The notes under the pieces were generated by a model that saw nothing but the letters and a program-made list of their open reading frames with translations, made no database searches and had not been told where the DNA came from. A DNA stretch of 63,855 nucleotides, counting the filler, from Olpidium bornovanus S191 (Eukaryota > Fungi > Olpidiomycota), in the NCBI GenBank assembly GCA_017911155.1. It is 26 parts of 26 records of this genome, joined end to end, with 100 filler letters (N's around TTAATTAATTAA, not from the genome) between each part and the next. Parts side by side here need not be neighbours in the genome. Positions count along the whole stretch, not along the records: positions 35,647 to 36,783 come from JAEFCI010013176.1; 25 more parts are not named here. One strand, written 5' to 3'. Below are positions 35,540 to 36,783 of the stretch, piece by piece. Made by a program: the position numbers and the translations under genes. Numbering within the stretch: position 1 is the stretch's first letter; the number at the start of each line of letters is the position of its first letter.

Positions 35540-35646
35540 ACAGAGANNNNNNNNNNNNNNNNNNNNNNNNNNNNNNNNNNNNNNNNNNNNTTAATTAATT
35601 AANNNNNNNNNNNNNNNNNNNNNNNNNNNNNNNNNNNNNNNNNNNN

Positions 35647-35839
35647 CCTGGCGATAATCATCTTTGACGCGAATTCCTGTCGCGTCAAAAATGTGTCCAA
35701 GAAACTCGACGGACGATCTTCCGAAGGAGGACTTCGCGAGGTTCACGTAGACTTGATGCTCGCGGAATTTTTGGAAGACCCGTCGTAAGTGTTCTCGGTG
35801 GTCATCTTCATCCTTGGAGTAGATTAGCACGTCATCCAT
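35647..35839 (-). mobile_element. Ty3/gypsy RT fragment (YxDD region), truncated at CATG
   Basis: MDDVLIYSKDEDDHREHLRRVFQKFREHQVYVNLAKSSFGRSSVEFLGHIF. Confidence 0.93.
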
Positions 35840-36783
35840 GGACGCTGAAGTACGACGTGTGCCGCTGGACGGCTCTGAAAACCTCCTCGCTGTTCCTGAC
35901 CGACTTCGCGAGCCGCGACGTGCGTTCCGAAATGAACGTGTCCAGCAGGGCGGTCCGCGCCGAGGGCCCGGCCGCTTCGCTGTACCTGGCCGCCGCCGCG
36001 AAGCTCGGGATGCTGGGCAACTACTTCTCCGGCCGAAAATTCGACGCCGTCGTCGACGATTTCGGCTACGAAGACGGCACCTACCGCATTTCGGCCTTCG
36101 TGGCCAGCTCCCCGGACGACGTGAGGGGGTTTTTTCTCTTTTTTTCTTTCTTTCTTTTATTTTTCCCGGAGAAAAGGAAAAAAAAAATGAGAACTCAGCG
36201 GTTTTGTCTTGCGTGATTGCCGCCCGGCATTTATGCGCGGATTTCTCGTTTTCGCAGCCAGCCGGAAAGGCCCTCCTCGCGATCAGGCCGGCGGAAACCT
36301 CGCCGATGTGTGACACCCCCGCGCCCGTGCTCACCGTCATCCAGGCGTGCCCGCCGACGAAAAGCATTCACGTGCTGCTGCCGGACGACAGCGCGACGCT
36401 GCTGGCCGACGACGGGACGCTGACGGAGCTGCTTCCGGTATCTGGTCTTCGCTCTCTCCTTGGACCTGTTGATGGTTTTTTTTTTTCCTTCCCTCGCTCA
36501 CCCTCCACCCACCCACCCGCCCCGGTCCTCCTCCTCCTTTTCATCCCCGTGCGATCTTTTTTTTCCCGCATACCACAACTCCGGCAAGACGAACTACCGG
36601 CCCCCGTCTTCACGGGGCAGGGCCGTCCCTCTCACGGCGAACATATACAACGCGGACCCGAGCATGCCGCGCTACCGCGACGTGTACAGCGTCAGCAAGG
36701 CGACAGGCTCGTACAAGCAGTGCGCCGGAAAGGCCGACCGCGCGTCCTGCGGGTGCACAGACGAGCAGCGGCTTTCGCCGTTC
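35836..36783 (+). CDS. CATSPERB: CatSper channel auxiliary subunit beta-like, internal fragment (3 exons)
   Basis: Exons 35836-36120, 36258-36437 and 36589-36783 splice in frame. They encode QACPPTK and ELLP|TNYRPPSSRGRAVPLTANIYNADPSMPR...SKATGSYKQCAGKADRASCGCTDEQRLS, matching recalled mammalian CATSPERB (LPxNYRPPS..GIAIPLTDNFYHADPSKP...SKKTGKFKQCAN...CNCTKDQKFS). Confidence 0.85.

Follow-up and report, generated by a model that had tools for sequence, protein, structure and literature searches.

The sequence under study spans 1137 bases (35647–36783) of the window, i.e., the whole stretch of 63,855 nucleotides, and carries a fragment of a CATSPERB gene on the plus strand, adjoined by a reverse transcriptase (RT) fragment on the minus strand. 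Three exons were recognised. Exon A (35837–36120) codes for about 94 aa and is in frame from the TGG at 35839, the two nucleotides at 35837–35838 being the end of a split codon. Exon B (36258–36437), which is present in RNA-type contigs, comprises 60 codons (PAGK...QACPPTK...ELLP), its translation including the peptide VIQACPPTKS and ending with ELLP. Exon C (36589–36783) comprises 65 codons, starts with TNYRPPSS and is ended by the edge of the piece; it encodes the block that is best conserved in the family (NYRPPS, ADPS, KQC and CxC). The exons are separated by two plus-strand introns, both GT..AG and in phase 0, namely intron 1 (36121–36257; 137 nt, GTGAGG...CGCAG) and intron 2 (36438–36588; 151 nt, GTATCT...GCAAG). 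The RT fragment (35647–35839, minus strand; Pfam RVT_1) has 64 open codons up to the edge of the piece.

Once joined, the three exons encode about 219 aa, with neither a stop nor a frameshift and with canonical splice sites at both introns, and their GC content ranges from 0.61 to 0.72. This is about a sixth of a typical CATSPERB protein of 1100–1400 aa; the transmembrane helix, the signal peptide and the N-terminal domains are absent from the encoded 219 aa, as those regions fall outside the piece.

Some further features of the DNA were recorded. In intron 1 a long T-rich tract precedes an A-rich one, and the two could pair; the stretch 36121–36167 was treated as a repeat in the read search, where reads were trimmed. 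Intron 2 is strongly pyrimidine-skewed, with C-rich repeats of the CCCA type. An antisense ORF of 258 aa (35591–36367, minus strand) spans the RT fragment, exon A, intron 1 and part of exon B; no family match was found for it outside the RT part, where it looks like an artefact of GC-rich sequence.

Transcripts and family assignment

Logan contigs of three runs (X1, X6 and X11), all labelled with one organism and whose types (RNA or DNA) were guessed, cover positions 35837–36120, 36258–36436/7 and 36588/9–36783, the introns being absent. In particular, all three exons are contiguous in a 907-nt contig of X6, with 36120 joined to 36258, and the 151-nt GT..AG skip corresponding to intron 2 is present in X1, X6 and X11. 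The first-pass annotation, made from the sequence alone, had proposed that three exons splice in frame; this is borne out by the translation, by the GT..AG introns and by the exactly matching joins in the RNA-type contigs, and the peptides it quoted are found in the translation at their place. Admitting the guessed run types, the CATSPERB gene is expressed and spliced at both GT..AG sites. The X1 contigs continue beyond the piece, by at least 1219 nt on the upstream side and by 768 nt on the downstream side, thus leaving room for a long mRNA of the CATSPERB type.

Run X11, guessed to be DNA, shows the spliced, intron-less form at low depth, which would mean either that the run type was misjudged or that there is a DNA copy without introns. 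None of the indexed DNA runs holds the introns or the junction at 35837. A 2026 RNA run bearing the same organism label as X1, X6 and X11 returned zero reads in the 6% of it that was read, indicating either that expression is condition-specific or that the owner of the gene is only sometimes present in the samples. Comparing the piece with the contigs, X1 and X6 differ from it at two bases in exon B (36258–36436) and show no differences in exons A and C, while X11 has a G>A change at 35965. Such changes probably reflect strains or alleles that differ between the isolate that was sequenced and the samples used for RNA.

The first-pass annotation had identified the locus as a homolog of CatSper-beta, and this identification was confirmed by three comparisons. 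Searching the Pfam CATSPERB family, as it had suggested, exon C gave a significant match to CATSPERB_C (PF15149) with 100.3 bits (E = 1.5e-28; profile positions 40–101 of 258), the gathering score of the family being 27 bits. The same exon aligned without gaps to mouse CATSPERB, within the extracellular part of CATSPERB_C (7eeb_E, residues 870–931, E = 5e-16), and to 9ubw_E (residues 849–910, E about 5e-16). Finally, a homolog profile was built without the query, taking 300 shuffles per exon as a control: the spliced 219 aa scored 190 bits (E = 3e-60) and were collinear over positions 25–242; taken alone, exon C scored 131 bits (best shuffle 4.0), exon B 30.5 bits (best shuffle 1.6) and exon A, weakly, 4.7 bits (best shuffle 0.8). 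Exon A carries the C-x-W motif found in chytrid homologs and is collinear with chytrid exons in the alignment. When exons A and B were searched singly, no Pfam family (head and Ig-like models included) and no solved structure was retrieved, and a word-indexed protein search with exon A gave no match.

Compared with mouse and human CATSPERB, the query is about 50% identical in the most conserved block and much less elsewhere. The motifs NYRPPS, PLTxNxYxADPSxP and SKxTGxYKQCA, together with the CxC cysteines, are conserved between exon C and the mouse protein; the mammalian motifs given in the first-pass annotation were correct in these three cases, whereas the last one reads CxCS in mouse and not CxCT. 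An exhaustive HMMER search with exon C over 1.84 billion representative proteins retrieved 153 proteins at E ≤ 1e-3, 99 of which at E ≤ 1e-10. The library proteins matching exon C are 59–70% identical to it and nothing above 70% identity was found in the representative set, which, along with the empty word search, indicates that the protein is absent from those collections. In the JGI metagenomes exon C matched one distant locus (L001), with 58% identity.

Given that long spurious ORFs do arise in GC-rich DNA, as exemplified by the 258-aa antisense ORF at 35591–36367, the resemblance might be due to chance or to low complexity, with no CatSper-related gene at the locus. We regard this as extremely improbable, and the explanation was discarded on the basis of the Pfam score (100 bits against a cutoff of 27), the match to the mouse structure, the shuffle control, in which exon C reached 131 bits and the shuffles never rose above 4, and the transcripts, which confirm splicing; the conserved intron positions described below argue against it as well. 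On the strength of these similarities, the piece is a genuine CATSPERB homolog and its assignment to the family is solid.

The intron lying directly before xNYRPPS, i.e., intron 2 of the query, was compared across homologous genes (loci L002, L004, L006 and L007). It is common to Chytriomyces, to the fungus KAI9366886 and to Allomyces; in the starfish Patiria an intron occurs at this site or within one codon of it (phase not resolved), and Gonapodya is devoid of it. As regards intron 1, the homologs of chytrids, Gonapodya and Patiria have an intron no more than 1–2 codons away, and Allomyces has no counterpart of it. Since the pre-xNYRPPS intron is common to the query, two chytrids and Allomyces, with a near site in Patiria, it appears to be an old intron, probably opisthokont-wide or older. 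Intron positions were also considered as a taxon marker and rejected as such, being ancient and common or near-common to starfish, chytrids and Allomyces: sites common or near-common with recognised orthologs support orthology and vertical descent, not a lineage.

The reverse transcriptase junction at the 5' end

On the minus strand, from 35839 to 35647, the stop-free translation MDDVLIYS...FLGH... matches Pfam RVT_1 (E = 9e-11; 42.3 bits, with a cutoff of 29.6) at profile positions 153–205 of 205, including the xDD catalytic motif and with the N-terminal part of the domain absent. This fragment, which the first-pass annotation had overlooked, begins exactly at the xDD motif, where it adjoins CATSPERB exon A, and 3 nt (CAT) are common to both. 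A complete retroelement (full RT, RNase H, integrase, LTRs or a poly-A tail) was not found in the piece, the RT ending at exon A on one side and at the edge of the piece on the other; going by the FLGH-type motif, the RT may be of the LTR class. Its GC content is about 0.50, against 0.61–0.72 in the exons, and its sequence words were found, as partial matches, only in soil or other metagenome runs and are absent from the runs holding the exons. A word search with the RT fragment gave no candidates, and the Atlas returned only generic RVT_1 clusters.

All three runs diverge from the piece at 35837 and have an identical upstream sequence (...CCCTGCCCAGGT). In the genomic sequence the bases directly before 35837 are TC, not AG, and those up to 35839 form the MDD codons of the RT on the opposite strand. 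The gene structures of Chytriomyces, KAI9366886 and Allomyces have a conserved phase-0 intron three codons before the conserved W, which by homology places the conserved acceptor 7 nt upstream of 35837 in the transcript. With the acceptor at this position and the RT codons extending to 35839, the RT replaces the acceptor and approximately the first 7 nt of the exon. Position 35837 is a breakpoint, not an intron. An alternative exon start at 35828–35836 (..RHPW) was rejected, as these bases encode the MDDV of the RT on the other strand and are absent from the transcripts.

As the antisense RT adjoins exon A at a non-splice breakpoint, either the isolate that was sequenced carries a copy truncated in association with a retroelement, or the contig is a chimera. 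In both cases the gene copy is incomplete, its 3' end being cut by the contig edge and its 5' end being the RT junction. It is possible, though we lean against it, that we are dealing with an allele or a paralog that is dead or truncated, its upstream exons having been removed by a retroelement-associated rearrangement; an intact copy, located elsewhere or carried by other strains, would then be the source of the transcripts. The lack of an AG acceptor at 35837, the RT reading frame (MDD...) filling the sequence right up to this junction, the different sequence found upstream of it in the transcripts of the three runs and the two base differences in exon B with respect to the RNA-type contigs would all fit such a history. 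On the contrary, the three exons are intact, with canonical splice sites and without stops or frameshifts, exons A and C are identical to the X1 and X6 contigs, and a junction in the middle of the RT with only 3 nt shared also resembles an amplification or assembly chimera.

Relatives of the gene and the identity of its owner

Named homologs were found in the chytrids Chytriomyces, Podochytrium, Phlyctochytrium, Polyrhizophydium and Chytridiales sp., in Gonapodya and in three Allomyces species; among protists and algae, in the ichthyosporean Chromosphaera, the malawimonad Gefionella, Diphylleia (CRuMs), the metamonad Carpediemonas and the streptophyte alga Chlorokybus atmophyticus; and in animals from starfish to coelacanth. 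Full-length proteins with the CATSPERB_C block were also noted in Chlorokybus (P0084), Carpediemonas (P0043), Gefionella (P0054), Diphylleia (P0033) and Chromosphaera (P0023). Judging from the homologs retrieved, the CATSPERB family is spread over most eukaryotic supergroups, so that a CATSPERB match by itself is no sign of a fungus.

In pairwise comparisons the spliced fragment is 47% identical to Chytriomyces, 46% to Chromosphaera, 44% to Gonapodya and 43% to both Allomyces and a metagenome protein, while the top phmmer scores were obtained with Allomyces, the metagenome protein, Gonapodya and Chytriomyces. The values for Chytriomyces hyalinus (KAJ3235481) and Gonapodya (KAJ3336492) refer to about 130 aa; the fungus KAI9366886 is 31% identical over 229 aa. 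In their full length these three proteins contain the CATSPERB_2nd, head and C domains, and each of the genes has an intron no more than two codons away from query intron 1. Chytrid and monoblepharid homologs keep the same block order as the query, including C-x-W (exon A) and CPP(T/S)K (exon B), but the query introns are about twice as long as those of chytrids and its exon GC (0.61–0.72) is higher than that of the chytrid loci (0.48–0.55). The Allomyces CATSPERB proteins (AMAG_07910 and the A. arbusculus and A. javanicus orthologs) gave the best phmmer scores of all; the Allomyces gene shares two introns, one directly before xNYRPPS and the other three codons ahead of the conserved W, and its locus has a similar GC content (0.61), whereas it lacks intron 1. 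The identity with the Chromosphaera perkinsii protein (EP01135_P009742, EukProt), measured over 131 aa, is no higher than that with chytrids. A region search with this protein, meant to label further relatives, gave 2 proteins only.

A phylogeny, which had been suggested as a check in the first-pass annotation, was run on the fragment. In a quick ML tree the query was sister to Chromosphaera (SH-aLRT 91). This pairing was lost in a careful tree of 71 sequences, where the query stood alone on the backbone adjoining the blastoclad clade, outside the Allomyces clade, and Chromosphaera was placed near animals; the query fell outside the chytrid clade in both trees. AU tests did not reject placing the query with the chytrid clade (p = 0.39), with the blastoclad clade (p = 0.22), with Chromosphaera (p = 0.39) or with animals (p = 0.54). 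The fragment is without phylogenetic resolution and its tree position is unstable; as the two trees disagree and the four AU tests reject nothing, phylogenetic placement was abandoned as a way of naming the owner.

Portions of the piece were found in metagenome and metatranscriptome runs from soil and roots, which gives circumstantial support to a zoosporic organism of these habitats. The Olpidium bornovanus assembly, obtained by binning from zoospores that were not axenic, totals 29 Mb in 13,695 contigs of roughly 2 kb (PMC7865070) and has an N50 of 0.002 Mb (PMC13358043 supplement); a piece of 1.1 kb is in keeping with such fragmentation, which is a lead but no proof. We take the owner of the gene to be a flagellated eukaryote, its genome compact, rich in GC and with short introns, that is found in soil- or root-associated samples. 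The first-pass annotation had further considered it a zoosporic fungus and had taken the introns as evidence against animal contamination. The former remains plausible but is not established, the fragment being about 43–47% identical to several groups, with an unstable tree position and four placements allowed by the AU tests. As for the latter, the introns measure 137 and 151 nt, compared with kilobases in the starfish gene, the single animal gene considered, and indicate that this is not a typical animal gene, although the AU test leaves an animal placement allowed; only the short introns and the GC-rich, compact look speak against an animal origin.

We consider it roughly an even bet that the gene belongs to an Olpidium-like zoosporic fungus, one that falls outside the chytrid and blastoclad clades sampled so far, the remaining probability going to another flagellated protist or to some associate of the organism in whose runs the transcript was found. 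That the gene comes from a non-fungal flagellated protist (an ichthyosporean, another holozoan or an unsampled lineage), or from a parasite or associate co-assembled and binned in, is a serious alternative, to which we give a little less than an even chance. The spread of the family over most eukaryotic supergroups, the Chromosphaera pairing in the quick tree, the AU tests allowing Chromosphaera and animals, the different GC content of the RT part and the exons and the different runs holding them, and the zero reads in the 6% read of the 2026 RNA run with the same organism label are all in accordance with such an origin. Against it, the Chromosphaera pairing is gone in the careful tree, the chytrid and blastoclad placements are equally allowed, and among the best phmmer scores, alongside a metagenome protein, are Allomyces, Gonapodya and Chytriomyces. 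Were the owner indeed non-fungal, the gene would still be CATSPERB and its attribution to a zoosporic fungus would be wrong.

Proposed role and significance

CATSPERB is the type I, single-pass auxiliary beta subunit of the CatSper flagellar Ca2+ channel. In the mouse complex the ectodomains of the beta, gamma, delta and epsilon subunits form a canopy over the pore made by CatSper1-4, and the channel admits Ca2+ into the flagellum, altering its beat and controlling sperm hyperactivation. We propose, with a probability of about 0.85, that a flagellated eukaryote expresses a CATSPERB ortholog of which the piece is a genomic fragment, the copy being incomplete at both ends. The 219 aa would represent the extracellular region before the transmembrane helix, equivalent to a portion of mouse CATSPERB ending near residue 933. 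By analogy with the mouse protein, this membrane-proximal stretch, in which the cysteines are conserved, would contribute to the canopy that covers the CatSper1-4 pore on the extracellular side. Provided that the organism has the pore subunits, the encoded protein may belong to a flagellar Ca2+ entry complex steering a zoospore or a gamete; in the swimming cell, going by the mammalian complex, external cues would lead to Ca2+ entry and this, in turn, to a change in the flagellar waveform.

CatSper outside animals has already been described. Cai and Clapham reported CatSper genes from Allomyces, the sexual stages of which express CATSPERB, G and D (bioRxiv 10.1101/230292). An ancient origin of CatSper1-4, beta and gamma was published by Cai et al. 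2014, as cited in PMC5362262, and CatSper is also said to exist in apusomonads (PMC12714865). Orthogroups for CATSPER1-4, B, D/E, G, T, EFCAB9 and TMEM249 appear in a 2026 atlas of fungal flagellar proteins, where they are marked as present in fungi, as confined to flagellated ones and as not universally retained (PMC13358043). This literature agrees with the first-pass annotation in limiting the family, within Fungi, to flagellated members and in its report from Allomyces (bioRxiv 10.1101/230292; PMC13358043); the novelty the annotation attached to the locus was overstated, since the CatSper subunits of flagellated fungi are already catalogued (PMC13358043 supplement). What is new here, as judged from pairwise comparisons, is one more CATSPERB ortholog, from a lineage without a close relative in the library (≤47% identity).

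The occurrence of CatSper outside animals shows that Ca2+ steering of the posterior flagellum is ancient. This new ortholog is useful for sampling the family and leaves the overall picture unchanged. It would gain in interest if the owner is Olpidium-like, as it would then help to date the loss of CatSper relative to the loss of the flagellum in fungi. That Olpidium, or another zoosporic lineage branching beside the non-flagellated terrestrial fungi, kept and expressed the CatSper accessory machinery up to the node of flagellum loss seems to us rather unlikely, but it is allowed by the small size of the contig (1.1 kb), by the soil and root signal, by the approximately 45% identity to chytrids and by the placement outside the sampled chytrid and blastoclad clades. 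If true, it would place CatSper machinery in a root parasite whose zoospores home in on their hosts.
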